A stretch of DNA of 64,000 bases from positions 1-64,000 of IMG/VR virus record IMGVR_UViG_3300047548_001236; one strand, given 5' to 3'. How positions within the stretch are numbered: the first letter of the stretch is position 1; every line of letters starts with the position of its first letter. The translations under genes and the position numbers were made by a program. Of this stretch, positions 8,245 to 53,299 are shown piece after piece. Under the pieces are notes generated by a model. That model did not search any database, was not told the DNA's origin, and was given only the letters and a program-made list of their open reading frames with translations.

Positions 8245-9036
8245 ATGTCTATTTATACACCTTATACCTATCTTATAGGATGGTCTTCAATAAGTAAATA
8301 TTATTATGGCGTCCGTTTTGCGAAAAACTGCCACCCAAGTGATTTGTGGGTGAAGTACTTCACCTCTTCCAAAACCGTAGCTGAATACCGTAAACTTTAC
8401 GGTGAGCCTGACGTGATTGAGGTTCGAAAAACATTCACAGATAAACACTCGGCAATTTTGTGGGAGGAGAGAGTGCTCCGAAAACTAGATATCAAGCACA
8501 ACGAAAAGATGCTTAATGCGAACGTTGCAGGCGCAATCGTGAAGAATCTTGATCACGCAAAAGGAAGACCGAGTAAACTCAGAGGCAGATATTGGACGGA
8601 GGAACAGAAAGCGAAGCTCAGAAAACCAAAATCAGTCCCTAGTCCGTTAAAGGGAAAACAATTGACAGATGAACATAAAGAGAAGCTCCGTGCTGCTAAA
8701 CGCGACTATAAACCGTGGAACGCTGGCAAAACTGGCCTACAGAGTCATTCGAGCGAAACAAAAGAAAAAATGCGGATGGCTAAGATCAAGTCAAAAGTCA
8801 TTATATTTTCAGAATGCCCTTGCTGTAAGGAAATAAAAGTTAAGCCAAATCAAACTTTCTGTAGCAATTCGTGTAGAGCGAAACACAACGCACAAAAATT
8901 ATCAGCTCAGGGAAAATTTGGATTTCAGAACAAGTCTAACCAAGATGCTGCGCAGTTAGCTAGAAGGCCCGTTGGGTTATACGGTGGAGCCCATACCGCA
9001 GACTCAATCAAGCAGCTAGGCGAACCTGTGGCTTGA
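8245..9036 (+). CDS. Homing endonuclease, GIY-YIG-like with NUMOD3 repeats
   Basis: YTYLIGW...YYYGVR, HSSETKEKMR repeats; late promoter TATAAATA at 8174-8181; antisense to its neighbours. Confidence 0.8.
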   Translation: MSIYTPYTYLIGWSSISKYYYGVRFAKNCHPSDLWVKYFTSSKTVAEYRKLYGEPDVIEVRKTFTDKHSAILWEERVLRKLDIKHNEKMLNANVAGAIVKNLDHAKGRPSKLRGRYWTEEQKAKLRKPKSVPSPLKGKQLTDEHKEKLRAAKRDYKPWNAGKTGLQSHSSETKEKMRMAKIKSKVIIFSECPCCKEIKVKPNQTFCSNSCRAKHNAQKLSAQGKFGFQNKSNQDAAQLARRPVGLYGGAHTADSIKQLGEPVA

Positions 9037-9336
9037 AATTATCGTTTGCAATGTTTGTTGCAGTTATTATTGTCTTCGCGGTAACGGCGCTTAGATCCCG
9101 GTAGCTCCATCCTGCCTAGTCCGCCTGTCGATCCTATTTCGAGCCCATCAAAGATACACTTGCTGATATCCTGTTAGATTTCAACTTGACCCACTACAGA
9201 TCAAAGTATCTAACACCGCTTCCGTTATCAGTCCGGTAGGTAGTTAACCTGTTTCCTTTGGCAAGTGTATCTATGGTGGACCCGCTGGGTACCGCCCCCA
9301 GGTCCAGAACGTGTTCAGTGAATATCATCACTACAA
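8962..9336 (-). ncRNA. ssrA: Circularly permuted (two-piece) tmRNA
   Basis: Acceptor piece ends GGGGGCGGTACCCAGCGGGTCCACCA (9274); intervening segment 9147-9273; coding piece starts GGGCTCGAAATAGGATCGAC (9146); tag ANDNFKPQVRLAA* (9008-9049); G3.U70 pair. Confidence 0.93.
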
Positions 9337-9339
9337 TTG

Positions 9340-9370
9340 TATTTATACTAGATCATGCTGAACAAGTCAA
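9340..9370 (-). promoter_or_regulatory. Overlapping sigma70-type (TTGACT-17-TATAAA) and T4 late (TATAAATA) promoter for tmRNA
   Basis: TTGACTTGTTCAGCATGATCTAGTATAAATA. Confidence 0.75.
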
Positions 9371-9500
9371 CCGCGATCGTATCTTCTTTGCTTTTCTTCG
9401 TAGGTGTCGTATCTTTCGGTCTCGCTTCCCATCAACTCCTCCTATGAAAAGAGGGGCTAACCATTGGCCCCTCACGAGTCTATTACGCGACCAGACGTAT

Positions 9501-18569: not shown

Positions 18570-18674
18570 TGGTATCCCAGACAGGATTCGAACCTGCACC
18601 TACGTCGACTGATAACCAGCGGTAGGCCCTAGCTTTTTATGGCCCCGGTGTTTACCCACTTCCACCACTAGGAT
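18570..18674 (-). tRNA. Degenerate Leu-like tRNA with enlarged variable arm
   Basis: Acceptor, D and T arms and CCA intact; anticodon stem poorly paired. Confidence 0.5.
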
Positions 18675-18680
18675 ATTTTT

Positions 18681-18757
18681 TGGAGGTCGACCATGGACTT
18701 GAACCACGACCCCAGCTCTTGCAAGAGCTGTACATTAACCAATTTTGCTAATCGACC
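18681..18757 (-). tRNA. tRNA-Cys-like with 8-nt anticodon loop
   Basis: CAGCT-CTTGCAAG-AGCTG; U73; CCA. Confidence 0.7.
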
Positions 18758-21237: not shown

Positions 21238-21313
21238 TGGCGGCCCTGGTGGGACTCGAACCCACGACCATGAGTTTTAGAGGCTCTAGCTCTACCATCT
21301 GAGCTACAAGGCC
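21238..21313 (-). tRNA. Amber suppressor tRNA (anticodon CUA)
   Basis: Loop CT-CTA-AA, canonical D/T arms, G73, CCA; two mismatches in anticodon stem. Confidence 0.8.
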
Positions 21314-23399: not shown

Positions 23400-24355
23400 T
23401 CTACTTGCAACGGGGAGTACGAGGGGATTTGCACCAGGCCCCTGAACCTTCTCCTCTTTTCAGCTCCTCAGGGAAGGAGCCTACTTCTGCACCTTGCTTA
23501 CTCCGCTCTGGAAGTAGAATATTGTTGCGGGTGAGATTACCCCGTATTGTGAGCGCCTTTCCGATGTACCACATCCCTTGCGAGGAGTGTTGTCGGGTTA
23601 TCCACAAGAGTCTTTCGATCATCTTGTATCGCTCAGTGCTGCCGTTTTTGAGGTCTGGCTGTTGACCTGTCGCATGTTACTACTCGTCCGTCTTTCCTAC
23701 GCCTGCCTTGCGAGCAGCTCAGAGGCGCTAACCTCCTACGTGATCATTCTGAACAACTACTCTAGCCTTGCGAGCCTTCGTAGGCCTGATTATCTTTCGA
23801 CTCAGGCATTAAGCACCTTTCGTAACACACCGGAGCAGACTTTCGCTTTTTGAATCTATGTTGCTTTGAACCAAAATCAAACGCTAATTTAATAGCTGCG
23901 AACCTACTGAGAAGTGCTGCTCCAGTTGCTCCACACCTTGTTAGATGCAGAATACCACACTCCTCCTGTCTTTCTCCTTGCGGGATACTCAACGTCACTT
24001 CACGAATCCGGTGTGACCCTTCCTCGTTGATGATCCTACACCGCCCTTCTACGCGAATAGTCGGACTATGTAGACACCTGTTGGACTTTTCCATTCGTTA
24101 GTTTGGCTGAAAACTGTTTGGGCGCCAACCCTCTTACACCTCACCGATCGGCTCTGGTGCTATCCTTTCGGACAGTCTTCCTAACTTACTGGATACCTCC
24201 TAGCTTCTAAGGCTAGAAGGGACTTGCTTTCGGTTTAATCCGAGTCAAGTCTATCCCAGGCTTGTATGAATGGACCATTTTACTGGCGCAGGTATGTAGG
24301 AATCCCTGCTTTGGGTGTGTTACCACACTTACCCTGACGACGTCATACCGCCATT
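23400..24355 (-). ncRNA. Candidate large structured ncRNA (about 950 nt)
   Basis: No credible ORF, many hairpins, downstream of a promoter and boxA within the tRNA island. Confidence 0.45.
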
Positions 24356-27947: not shown

Positions 27948-28078
27948 GTGTATTCTCCGTATGTTTTGTATATGTGCGTATATTTTTGTATGAACAATGT
28001 GTAGGCACGATGTAGTAATGCGTTCACAACACTATTTATACACGGTTACGCATACGATACAGCACCTACGAAGAAAAA

Positions 28079-28177
28079 TATCCTGGTTGGACTCGAACCA
28101 ACGGCCTGCGCTTTATTCCCAGCGTTTGGGTCCTTCACCATGAGGGAGCACTGCTCTACCGACTGAGCTACAGGATG
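28079..28177 (-). ncRNA. tRNA-like RNA with 34-nt anticodon loop, no CCA
   Basis: Canonical D and T arms; two hairpins in the anticodon loop. Confidence 0.6.
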
Positions 28178-31331: not shown

Positions 31332-31425
31332 TGGTGCCCATGACAGGATTCGAACCTGCATGCCCCTTTTACAAGGCGGCGCCATCTCAGGGCGCTGTGG
31401 CTACCAGAAGTTACACCACATGGGC
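31332..31425 (-). tRNA. tRNA-Leu(GAG), second copy
   Basis: Loop CTGAGAT, long variable arm. Confidence 0.82.
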
Positions 31426-31631: not shown

Positions 31632-31712
31632 TGGTGCTGATGGAGGGACTCGAACCCTCAAAAACTCACTTTCTGAAAATGAGATGTCTACCTGAAATTG
31701 CATCACATCAGC
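31632..31712 (-). tRNA. tRNA-Leu(CAG), short variable region
   Basis: Loop TTCAGAA. Confidence 0.8.
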
Positions 31713-38924: not shown

Positions 38925-39018
38925 TGGAGCCCTGAATAGGATTCGAACCTACATTTGCCTTTTACAGCTCATTCCAGTTACCTTTCTCGACGTTCGTAGC
39001 GTCGGGGGATACCAGGGC
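38925..39018 (-). ncRNA. D-armless tRNA-like RNA with ACG anticodon arm and long variable region
   Basis: GCCCTGG-TATCCCC-CGACG(CTACGAA)CGTCG...T arm-CCA. Confidence 0.65.
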
Positions 39019-39068: not shown

Positions 39069-39422
39069 TGGTGGACTGTATCGGATTTGAACCGACATTG
39101 TAAGGTTATCTGACACCAGATGGTCGTTACCGACATGGATTTACACAGGCCCCACGGTTACCGTTGTTTACTAGTCAACAGCCCATTGGTGCCTAAGTCG
39201 TACATGCTAAAGTCAGCAAGACGAACATAGGACTTTATCTTGGTGGATCTGACGGGACTCGAACCCGCGTAACTCTGCCTTGTGTACCCCTAACGAATTA
39301 AGGTGGCAGTGTGATTCCTCACGTACACTAACAGACCCATAATTTGGTGGAACAGGGAAGTCGTGTAGTCGCTCCCAGGCGGCCCATATTGGCCCCGCAG
39401 TTATACACTCTGCGCATGCCCC
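39069..39422 (-). ncRNA. Three tRNA-like RNAs with G3.U70 Ala-type acceptors and aberrant bodies
   Basis: 39069-39184, 39241-39338, 39345-39422; each GGG.../...TCC-A-CCA. Confidence 0.65.
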
Positions 39423-41003: not shown

Positions 41004-41621
41004 CTAAGGTGTGTAATTACGACACTCTGATAATGACTGTATGAATACAATATTTTTGTAGGTATTCATCAGAATATGAACTTTCTCTGTCTGCGCTTTG
41101 AAAGCAGCGGGATTTTTAGGGTCGAGATACACGTCATATTTTGGCAGATAAAAATCAGGAAAATAATTGTGAGTCACTCCTGCTGTATCTATCCAAGGTA
41201 TAGGGTCTGGCCTAACCCATTCGATATTCAGTTCATCGAGCCTTTGAGCAAGTGCTAGTTCCCACGATGAGTCTAACATAACACCCTTATATTCGACAAC
41301 CCCTTTTCGCAGTCTTCTGTGCTTTGATGCGAGAGCTTTTACTCTGGTTTTTTGTTTCGATTCATCTGTATGTTTTCTACCGAGAAATGTTCTATGATCG
41401 ACGTGATCATACACACCGTTTTTATGGTGTTCAGACACTTTTTCAGCAGCTCTTTTTCTACCCTCTATGGTTTTAGCATTTCTTGCTTTTTCCATATTAT
41501 TAACGTAGGCGTTTCTTTTAGGATTTGAGTCACACCATCTACTGTGATTAGCCATCCAACCTTTTGGTTTATCGTCTAGATCATATGTTGTGTTGCAGTG
41601 TTTGCAAGACCCTTGCTTCAT
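41004..41621 (-). CDS. Putative PD-(D/E)XK homing endonuclease with NUMOD3
   Basis: GRKHTDESKQK; DSSWE...YFPDFYLP...YLDPK; late promoter upstream. Confidence 0.75.
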   Translation of the reverse strand: MKQGSCKHCNTTYDLDDKPKGWMANHSRWCDSNPKRNAYVNNMEKARNAKTIEGRKRAAEKVSEHHKNGVYDHVDHRTFLGRKHTDESKQKTRVKALASKHRRLRKGVVEYKGVMLDSSWELALAQRLDELNIEWVRPDPIPWIDTAGVTHNYFPDFYLPKYDVYLDPKNPAAFKAQTEKVHILMNTYKNIVFIQSLSECRNYTP

Positions 41622-41674: not shown

Positions 41675-41800
41675 TGGCGACCCCGGTAGGACTCGAACCT
41701 ACAACCTACTGATTAGATCGTGCCTTAGAAGATTCGCACTTCACTGGGCTTCCATACCCTCAGGCCAAGTCAGTTGCTCTATCCATTGAGCTACGGAGTC
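41675..41800 (-). tRNA. tRNA-Arg(UCU) interrupted by a 50-nt insert in the anticodon
   Basis: Removing 41717-41766 restores a 76-nt cloverleaf with loop CTTCTAA. Confidence 0.85.
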
Positions 41801-52891: not shown

Positions 52892-53299
52892 CTACCGGTA
52901 GCGCTGGACGTTCACACCAAGTTTTTGCAATAATGTTATCCCTGCAGCGTCACGGTACATTTCATCGTAGTACACCTCTTTAATTCCAGCTGTGTACATC
53001 TGCTTGGCACACTCAACACATGGGGAATGCGTAACGAAAAACACCGCCCCTTCCGAACTTTCAGTGCACTTTGCTAGCTTAGCAATGCAGTTGGCCTCGG
53101 CATGCAATACTTCGATTTTTGTCTTACCGTTTTCGTCCTCACATGTATTGTCAAACCCTGGAGGGGTTCCATTGTACCCTATCGAAAGGATTCTTCCATC
53201 TTTAACAGCTATCGCGCCTACTTTAAGCCTCTGTGCCTTTGACAGAGAGGCAAAAACATGAGCCACTTGCATATAAGCATCTTTCATTTCTTGCTTCAT
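52892..53299 (-). CDS. cd: dCMP deaminase
   Basis: GYNG, HAEAN, SPCVECAK. Confidence 0.92.
   Translation of the reverse strand: MKQEMKDAYMQVAHVFASLSKAQRLKVGAIAVKDGRILSIGYNGTPPGFDNTCEDENGKTKIEVLHAEANCIAKLAKCTESSEGAVFFVTHSPCVECAKQMYTAGIKEVYYDEMYRDAAGITLLQKLGVNVQRYR

Follow-up and report, generated by a model that had tools for sequence, protein, structure and literature searches.

Layout and detection of the candidate gene

Can a tRNA that lacks a D hairpin between its acceptor and anticodon stems still adopt an L-shape, be charged and decode? This question is raised by a 94 nt locus on the minus strand of a phage genome, situated within an array of tRNA genes. The window analysed here comprises positions 1 to 64,000 of an IMG/VR virus record (IMGVR_UViG_3300047548_001236) that is 282,855 bases long, was rated complete by CheckV and apparently stems from a freshwater metagenome.

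Read on the minus strand, the candidate gene consists of a 7-bp acceptor stem (GCCCUGG/UCAGGGC, including one G-U pair), a 7-nt connector (UAUCCCC), an anticodon arm (CGACG-CUACGAA-CGUCG), 35 nt containing the motif AACUGG, and a T arm (GUAGG-UUCGAAU-CCUAU) followed by U73 and an encoded CCA. All elements listed in a preliminary description of the locus, including the perfect Arg(ACG) anticodon arm, were found. The features are as follows (nt, position within the RNA; family statistics are explained in the next sections).

38925–39018, minus strand: whole gene of 94 nt, candidate rewired tRNA-Arg(ACG) of the long-variable subtype; 88.6 bits against the family model R1
39012–39018, minus strand: acceptor 5′ strand, nt 1–7 (GCCCUGG), partner 38929–38935; all seven pairs covary family-wide, with 99.8% of cells paired
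39009–39011, minus strand: U8, A9 and U10, with nt 10 assigned to nt 47 (38972), here as U-A; U8 and A9 are family-invariant by column counts
39005–39008, minus strand: nt 11–14 (CCCC), 5′ strand of the predicted D-like helix, with C11-G38 and C12-G37 paired and C13 opposite A36 (pair counts, 104 members)
38988–39004, minus strand: anticodon arm, nt 15–31, with a 5-bp stem and the loop CUACGAA (anticodon ACG at 38995–38997); stem 97.5% paired, with many double changes
38981–38987, minus strand: nt 32–38 (AGAAAGG), of which G37 and G38 make up the 3′ strand of the predicted D-like helix, preceded by nucleotides of an internal loop
38973–38980, minus strand: D-loop-like segment, nt 39–46 (UAACUGGA), read as A14 A15 C16 U17 G18 G19 A20; near-invariant in the family
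38957–38968, minus strand: extra small hairpin in the variable region, nt 51–62 (GCU-GUAAAA-GGC); a hairpin occurs at the same place in 20 of 87 members
38953–38954, minus strand: A65 and U66, directly 5′ of the T stem; U66 (N48) is the proposed partner of A41 (R15), based on R15/N48 counts
38936–38952, minus strand: T arm, nt 67–83 (GUAGG-UUCGAAU-CCUAU); 100% of cells paired, double changes at three of five pairs
38925–38935, minus strand: acceptor 3′ strand (38929–38935), U73 (38928) and CCA (38925–38927); CCA is encoded in 100 of 105 first-parsed sequences

The candidate thus combines canonical tRNA features (a 7-bp acceptor, a 5-bp anticodon stem, a 7-nt loop with U33, a 5-bp T stem, a UUCRA loop and CCA) with the absence of a cloverleaf D hairpin, only 7 nt being located between the acceptor and anticodon stems. 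It was not called by ARAGORN, and the Rfam tRNA model RF00005 (gathering threshold, 29 bits) gave no match at 38925–39018, even at E≤10. The sole Rfam match on the candidate was to tRNA-Sec (15.9 bits, E=4.9). This assignment was rejected, as the score lies well below the 47-bit threshold, the anticodon is ACG rather than UCA, and the acceptor comprises 7 rather than 8 bp. Folding with ViennaRNA returned the acceptor, anticodon and T stems plus the small hairpin. The minimum free energy (–24 kcal/mol; z=–0.59 relative to shuffled sequences) indicates an unremarkable stability, which was not counted as evidence.

Homologues in viral and prokaryote genomes

To determine the extent of the family, members were collected from IMG/VR pattern scans by structure-aware parsing combined with a covariance model, R1, built from 87 relatives. 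The first parse yielded 105 sequences, including one mis-parse that was subsequently removed. Alignment statistics were calculated on 87 sequences. In total, at least 104 distinct relatives in at least 93 loci were obtained, so that the homologues which the preliminary description had proposed to search for do exist. The exact 17-nt anticodon arm was present at 43 IMG/VR loci, most of which represent ordinary tRNA-Arg(ACG) genes; the odd layout was observed in five of these loci, corresponding to four distinct sequences with different acceptor sequences. With a pattern composed of the anticodon loop and the downstream motif, 117 of the 120 matches listed showed the layout (at least 119 loci in IMG/VR), and a version without the anticodon constraint (IMG/VR, at least 119 loci) added members with UCG, UCU and CCU loops and one with a GAU loop.

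The candidate scores 88.6 bits against R1 (E=1.6e-18), while ordinary tRNAs from its own genome reach at most 36 bits, and its match to the family is far beyond chance. Its family signature is represented by UAUCCCC, AAGG-UAACUGGA and AAAU, following the general rule U8 A9 N CC, (A)GG-UAAYUGGA and A-U before the T stem. ARAGORN called none of the 87 family members (0/87), and a BLAST search of the 1.1-kb neighbourhood of the candidate against phages recovered the flanking ordinary tRNAs only.

The rewired gene is also carried by at least 11 cultured phages, in which it was missed by the deposited annotation. Carriers without a feature annotated over the gene include Xanthomonas phages BUDD, X1, XacN1 and Xoo-sp13, Stenotrophomonas phages DLP_6, CM1 and RAS14 (the CM1 record being entirely unannotated), Rhizobium phage RHph_I1_18, and Microbacterium phages Zooman and Pumpernickel. 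In Zooman, the gene is located between an annotated tRNA-Arg(acg) and an annotated tRNA-Arg(ccg). A pattern search of one genome per species across 185,579 prokaryote species identified only eight true members, and all six of those examined lie within dense tRNA arrays. The remaining 33 matches had arisen by chance in coding DNA. Among Logan contigs from 24 runs, relatives of ~92–94% identity cover the candidate and its neighbour in the RNA-labelled runs X18 and X13, although these contigs possibly derive from DNA.

A description of this architecture was not found in open-access papers and preprints, including a search for the conserved motif as a text string, and phages are nowhere mentioned in a review of non-canonical tRNAs.

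Covariation and the order of the helices

Across the 87-sequence alignment, 99.8% of cells are paired in the acceptor stem, 97.5% in the anticodon stem and 100% in the T stem. Changes on both sides of a pair were observed in 410 cells, compared with 103 in shuffled alignments, and the covariation score exceeded that of all 500 shuffles and collapsed when the partners were slid by one to three columns. RNAalifold, applied to the 87 members, independently returned just these three stems and no D hairpin.

The family connector reads U8 A9 N10 C11 C12 N13 N14 and is extended to 8 nt in nine members, mostly of the UCU type. On the other side of the anticodon arm, three nucleotides are followed by AAGG and UAAYUGGA. 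A first register for pairing between these two regions, consisting of N14-P2 and N13-P3, was rejected, as only 44.8% of its cells pair; these positions are consistent with an internal loop that is structured in part. Better support was obtained for a register in which connector nt 11–13 are predicted to pair with the three nucleotides preceding UAA. In this register, the pair at nt 11 is formed in 104 of 104 members (C-G in 103, G-C in one), as is the pair at nt 12 (C-G 92, G-C 8, U-A 3 and A-U 1). The third pair is found mainly in non-ACG members, where 51 of 60 cells are paired and the helix occurs in the combinations CGG/CCG, CGA/UCG, CAG/CUG, CUC/GAG, CCG/CGG and CCU/AGG. Furthermore, nt 10 can pair with the base directly after UGGA in 54 of 87 members, involving all four Watson-Crick types (mean of shuffles 38.9, maximum 51 in 2000 trials). 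In ACG-type members, the D-like helix is short, comprising just two G-C pairs and, in about 62% of members, the nt 10 pair.

This register and its pair counts imply a swapped order of elements. The gene order deduced from the comparison is nt 8–9, the 5′ strand of the D-stem, the anticodon arm, the 3′ strand of the D-stem, the D-loop-like octamer, the last D-stem base, the variable region and the T arm; compared with the cloverleaf, the D-loop and the anticodon arm have exchanged places on the D-stem. The locus had previously been described as 'D-armless', which holds for the D hairpin but not for the stem itself, as a short D-stem is present (connector nt 11 and 12 being paired throughout) with the anticodon arm as its cap.

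The same data bear on the notion that the gene is a decaying pseudogene or the functionless scar of a recombination event, which could have involved a tRNA-Arg and the neighbouring tRNA-Leu(GAG) (31332–31425, minus strand, 94 nt). The 3′ 42 nt of the candidate are 79% identical to positions 31332–31373 of that gene, the likeness extending over its T arm and acceptor, and the GUAAAA loop of the candidate hairpin matches the variable arm of the tRNA-Leu. The hairpin is also weak: such hairpins are seen in 20 of the 87 members with differing sequences, all of which fold, and that of the candidate is the weakest (3 bp, –2.5 kcal/mol). The fold energy of the whole RNA is not significant. Nevertheless, at least 104 distinct sequences share the architecture, every helix shows compensatory changes and the tertiary-contact bases are invariant; this pattern is incompatible with neutral decay, and the covariation effectively refutes this explanation, which we consider extremely improbable. 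The resemblance to tRNA-Leu(GAG) may instead reflect an exchange of sequence between genes of the array.

Sequence signatures of tertiary contacts and arginine identity

The UAAYUGGA segment is almost invariant across the 104 relatives and reads like the D-loop of a tRNA-Arg (A14 R15 Y16 U17 G18 G19 A20). In the 87-sequence alignment, U8, A9, A14 and G18 show no variation, while G19 is present in 79 of 87 sequences, the remainder resulting from an aligner shift in members with a D-loop-like segment shortened by one base. The second A of UAAYUGGA (R15) and the base preceding the T stem (N48) occur as A-U in 100 cases, G-C in four and G-G in one; at the sequence level, this covariation is that of a Levitt 15-48 pair. 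The T loop is of the canonical type, UUCGAAU being present in 48 of 87 members. The near-invariant octamer and the R15/N48 covariation support the initial interpretation of an arm-rearranged tRNA in which the variable region would supply the elbow contact.

The anticodons of the 104 members are ACG (84), UCU (10), UCG (5), CCU (3), CCG (1) and GAU (1), such that 103 of 104 specify arginine. Among the 87 first-parsed members, the anticodon loop is CUACGAA in 71 and AUACGAA in six. The loop of the candidate, with U33-A34-C35-G36 within the 7-nt sequence CUACGAA, has the sequence features of a TadA substrate and matches the TadA substrate loop of Escherichia coli tRNA-Arg2. Bacterial arginine identity has been attributed to A20, the main determinant for arginyl-tRNA synthetase (ArgRS), together with C35 and U/G36; A/G73 is the better-known discriminator, while U73 is also listed (PMC9976931). 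In the rewired family, an A follows G18 G19 in 80 of 87 members, and 103 of 104 carry C35 together with either G36 or U36; the corresponding nucleotides of the candidate are A46, C23 and G24. The discriminator base among the 105 first-parsed sequences is U in 58, G in 33, A in 12 and C in two.

A decoder with altered identity or properties, i.e. one that is charged by another synthetase, retains an unedited A34 or reads codons unusually through a flexible core, might be suspected from the predominance of U73 and from the single member with a GAU anticodon and no CCA. The retention of C35, of G36 or U36 and of A at the A20 position throughout the arginine members argues against it, as does the match of the loop to the TadA substrate loop of E. 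coli tRNA-Arg2, and such a decoder is very unlikely. The exceptional member itself (L165, 190–271, minus strand; IMGVR_UViG_3300022752_000079) carries the isoleucine anticodon GAU, A73 and CUA instead of CCA, and could represent either an identity switch or a dead copy. The restriction to arginine would fit a single origin in a tRNA-Arg, after which the family stayed within ArgRS identity.

Genomic setting and codon usage

The candidate lies in a minus-strand tRNA array, in which ARAGORN called 38 tRNA genes in the window and 51 in the genome. An ordinary tRNA-Arg(ACG) had been reported as missing from the window, and this absence extends to the whole record, the only arginine genes among the 51 ARAGORN tRNAs being UCG and CCU. 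Arginine codons in 148 long ORFs of the phage are dominated by CGT (33%) and CGC (15%), which together account for 48% and are the commonest, and a tRNA reading CGT or CGC other than the candidate was not found among the ARAGORN calls of the genome. Judging from these calls, the candidate appears to be the only tRNA of the phage for its commonest arginine codons.

A similar picture was obtained for the family. All 84 loci checked represent tRNA arrays, with two to 38 ARAGORN genes each. A canonical arginine gene with the same anticodon was present in only six of these 84 loci, while canonical UCU, CCU, UCG and CCG genes are frequent there. As duplicates are rare and other canonical arginine isoacceptors are common, the rewired gene is likely to fill the slot of a missing isoacceptor.

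This occupancy pattern is relevant to two further explanations. The gene could serve as a structural or processing element of the array transcript, such as a handle for RNase P or RNase Z, a punctuation signal or an integration site. Its invariable location in polycistronic-looking tRNA arrays would suit such a role, for which the acceptor/T minihelix is all that RNase P and RNase Z need. Conversely, a processing element has no need for an arginine-restricted anticodon loop, A20 or Levitt covariation, nor would it take the place of the isoacceptor that the arrays lack; we regard it as highly improbable.

Alternatively, the RNA could be a non-decoding tRNA mimic, excluded from translation by its odd core, whose role as a sponge or decoy would be directed at TadA, ArgRS or a tRNA-targeting defence nuclease of the host. 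Phage tRNAs are known to counter tRNA-cleaving immunity (PMC12409363, PMC13096335). The anticodon loop is nearly identical to that of a host-type tRNA-Arg(ACG), and a few phages, e.g. L012 and Zooman, possess both canonical and rewired Arg(ACG) genes. However, the rewired gene usually replaces the canonical isoacceptor rather than doubling it, the acceptor/T arm, CCA, A20 and Levitt pair are conserved despite being needless for a pure anticodon-loop decoy, and the architecture is used with five different arginine anticodons. A mimic of this kind is accordingly held to be unlikely. Somewhat more credible, though still doubtful, is a true topological isomer of a tRNA that would be fully decoding yet invisible or resistant to host factors reading the D-arm core (defence or host-shutoff nucleases), and thus serve immune evasion. 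Action as a decoy or in immune evasion is thus the foremost alternative to decoding, or an extra layer upon it.

Neither an ArgRS gene nor a TadA-type deaminase was found in the phage. Its single protein with a cytidine/adenosine-deaminase fold (52892–53299, minus strand; 135 aa) is of the ComEB/dCMP type, scoring 90 bits to that type versus 27 bits to TadA. In the absence of phage-encoded ArgRS or TadA, charging and formation of inosine at position 34 would depend on the host.

A model for the rewired tRNA

Based on the conservation and covariation described above, the product of the gene is probably an elongator tRNA-Arg(ACG) that is functional despite its non-cloverleaf topology. By comparison across the family, connector nt 10–13 form a short D-like helix with the strand on the 3′ side of the anticodon arm, and the UAAYUGGA octamer bulges from this helix, the chain then reaching the T stem by way of the variable region. 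The anticodon stem and the D-like helix may stack as one continuous arm, and the usual elbow could be rebuilt by U8-A14, A15-U48 and the interaction of G18/G19 with the T loop, such that the L-shape is kept. The host ArgRS would charge the RNA via A20, C35 and G36, and the host TadA would convert A34 to inosine; the edited tRNA would then be able to read CGU, CGC and CGA, the latter set including the commonest arginine codons of the phage. Points that weigh against this reading are the fold energy, no better than that of shuffled sequences, the short D-like helix of the ACG type, the predominance of U73 and the complete dependence on host enzymes. The architecture is likely to have originated when the D and anticodon arms were partially duplicated in tandem and a deletion ensued, after which changes in the anticodon may have spread it among arginine isoacceptors.

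Comparison with other non-canonical tRNAs

Outside organelles, the order in which the arms of the cloverleaf follow one another is regarded as near-universal. A canonical tRNA-Arg(ACG), such as E. coli tRNA-Arg2, shares with the rewired family the 7/5 acceptor and T arms, the CUACGAA loop, the A-R-Y-U-G-G-A segment with A20, a Levitt-type 15-48 pair, U8, the encoded CCA and the location in a tRNA array. In contrast to the canonical molecule, the two D-stem strands of the rewired RNA are predicted to be split by the whole anticodon arm, and the D-loop is positioned 3′ of this arm, leading into the variable region.

Circularly permuted tRNA genes of red algae, reportedly described by Soma and colleagues in 2007, are said to carry the 3′ half before the 5′ half, with processing restoring the cloverleaf. 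A rearranged order of segments is common to these genes and to the rewired gene. A permuted-gene reading was nevertheless rejected, given that the acceptor strands are located at the ends of the gene and CCA is terminal, so that no simple processing could restore the canonical order.

Mitochondrial tRNAs lacking a D arm, e.g. nematode mt-tRNA-Ser(UCU), likewise have a connector of ~7 nt and no D hairpin, while having lost the D-loop/T-loop elbow and being flexible (PMC7609411). Unlike these RNAs, the rewired family keeps a canonical T loop and a relocated, complete D-loop-like segment, and is encoded by bacterial phages rather than by organelles. Assignment to the mitochondrial D-armless type was rejected on the basis of the conserved D-loop-like GG and UUCGAAU T loop.

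Allo-tRNAs and 8/4 tRNA-Ser/His (Mukai et al., PMC5389517) are also non-canonical, occur in phage tRNA clusters and are missed by standard annotation. Their acceptor and T lengths are altered (8/4 or 9/3) with the cloverleaf order being kept, whereas in the rewired family the lengths are standard and the order is changed. Finally, the tRNA-like domain of tmRNA and viral tRNA-like structures similarly lack a normal D hairpin, and their elbow is formed by a T loop together with an analogue of the D-loop. These structures have no decoding anticodon arm, in contrast to the full arm with arginine anticodons of the rewired family.

If the model is correct, the L-shape can be encoded by another wiring, in which the elbow contacts and arginine identity are kept while the D-stem, D-loop and anticodon arm are re-ordered. 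The annotation gap would mean that phage tRNA repertoires, and the codon-coverage inferences drawn from them, are systematically short of tRNA-Arg. The family would furthermore offer a natural system for exploring the core requirements of ArgRS, TadA, EF-Tu, the ribosome and tRNA-targeting immune nucleases, as well as a candidate scaffold for orthogonal tRNAs.

Other irregular elements of the array

Several further unusual genes were observed in and near the array. Immediately upstream of the candidate are two tRNA-like genes (39070–39184 and 39241–39338, both minus strand), each with a normal T arm, an encoded CCA and a 7-bp acceptor in which G3-U70 and A73 mark alanine identity. The remainder of each gene is composed of small hairpins with GNRA, UUCG and GUGU loops, with no recognisable anticodon arm. 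Both were missed by ARAGORN and by the Rfam tRNA model, Rfam giving only a weak permuted-tmRNA match (18.7 bits); BLAST and nhmmer searches for relatives in the collected loci returned generic T-arm matches only.

Four Rfam tRNA matches on the minus strand were missed by ARAGORN (41678–41800, 28078–28177, 18573–18674 and 31635–31712). Three of these are 100–123 nt in length and contain apparent insertions of 25–50 nt, e.g. in the anticodon loop of 41678–41800, which may be intron-like or mark further irregular tRNAs. At 18681–18757 (minus strand), ARAGORN reported a four-base anticodon, UGCA, corresponding to an 8-nt anticodon loop in a gene that scores 45.3 bits with the Rfam tRNA model. A tRNA with the anticodon CUA, an amber suppressor labelled 'Pyl' by ARAGORN, is located at 21238–21313 (minus strand); the stop codons of the 148 long ORFs are TAG in eight, TGA in 82 and TAA in 58.

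Among the tRNA genes of the array lies a full-length GOLLD RNA (23528–23965, minus strand; 194.9 bits), and a tmRNA gene of the permuted, two-piece type (8962–9374, minus strand) is located nearby. The array also contains an ORF of 205 aa (41004–41621, minus strand) with 79 relatives of 27–60% identity in otherwise unrelated viral contigs. The 79 loci are non-syntenic, with a member of the rewired family being present in one of them (L295) only, a pattern that suggests a mobile gene, perhaps encoding a homing-endonuclease-like protein.
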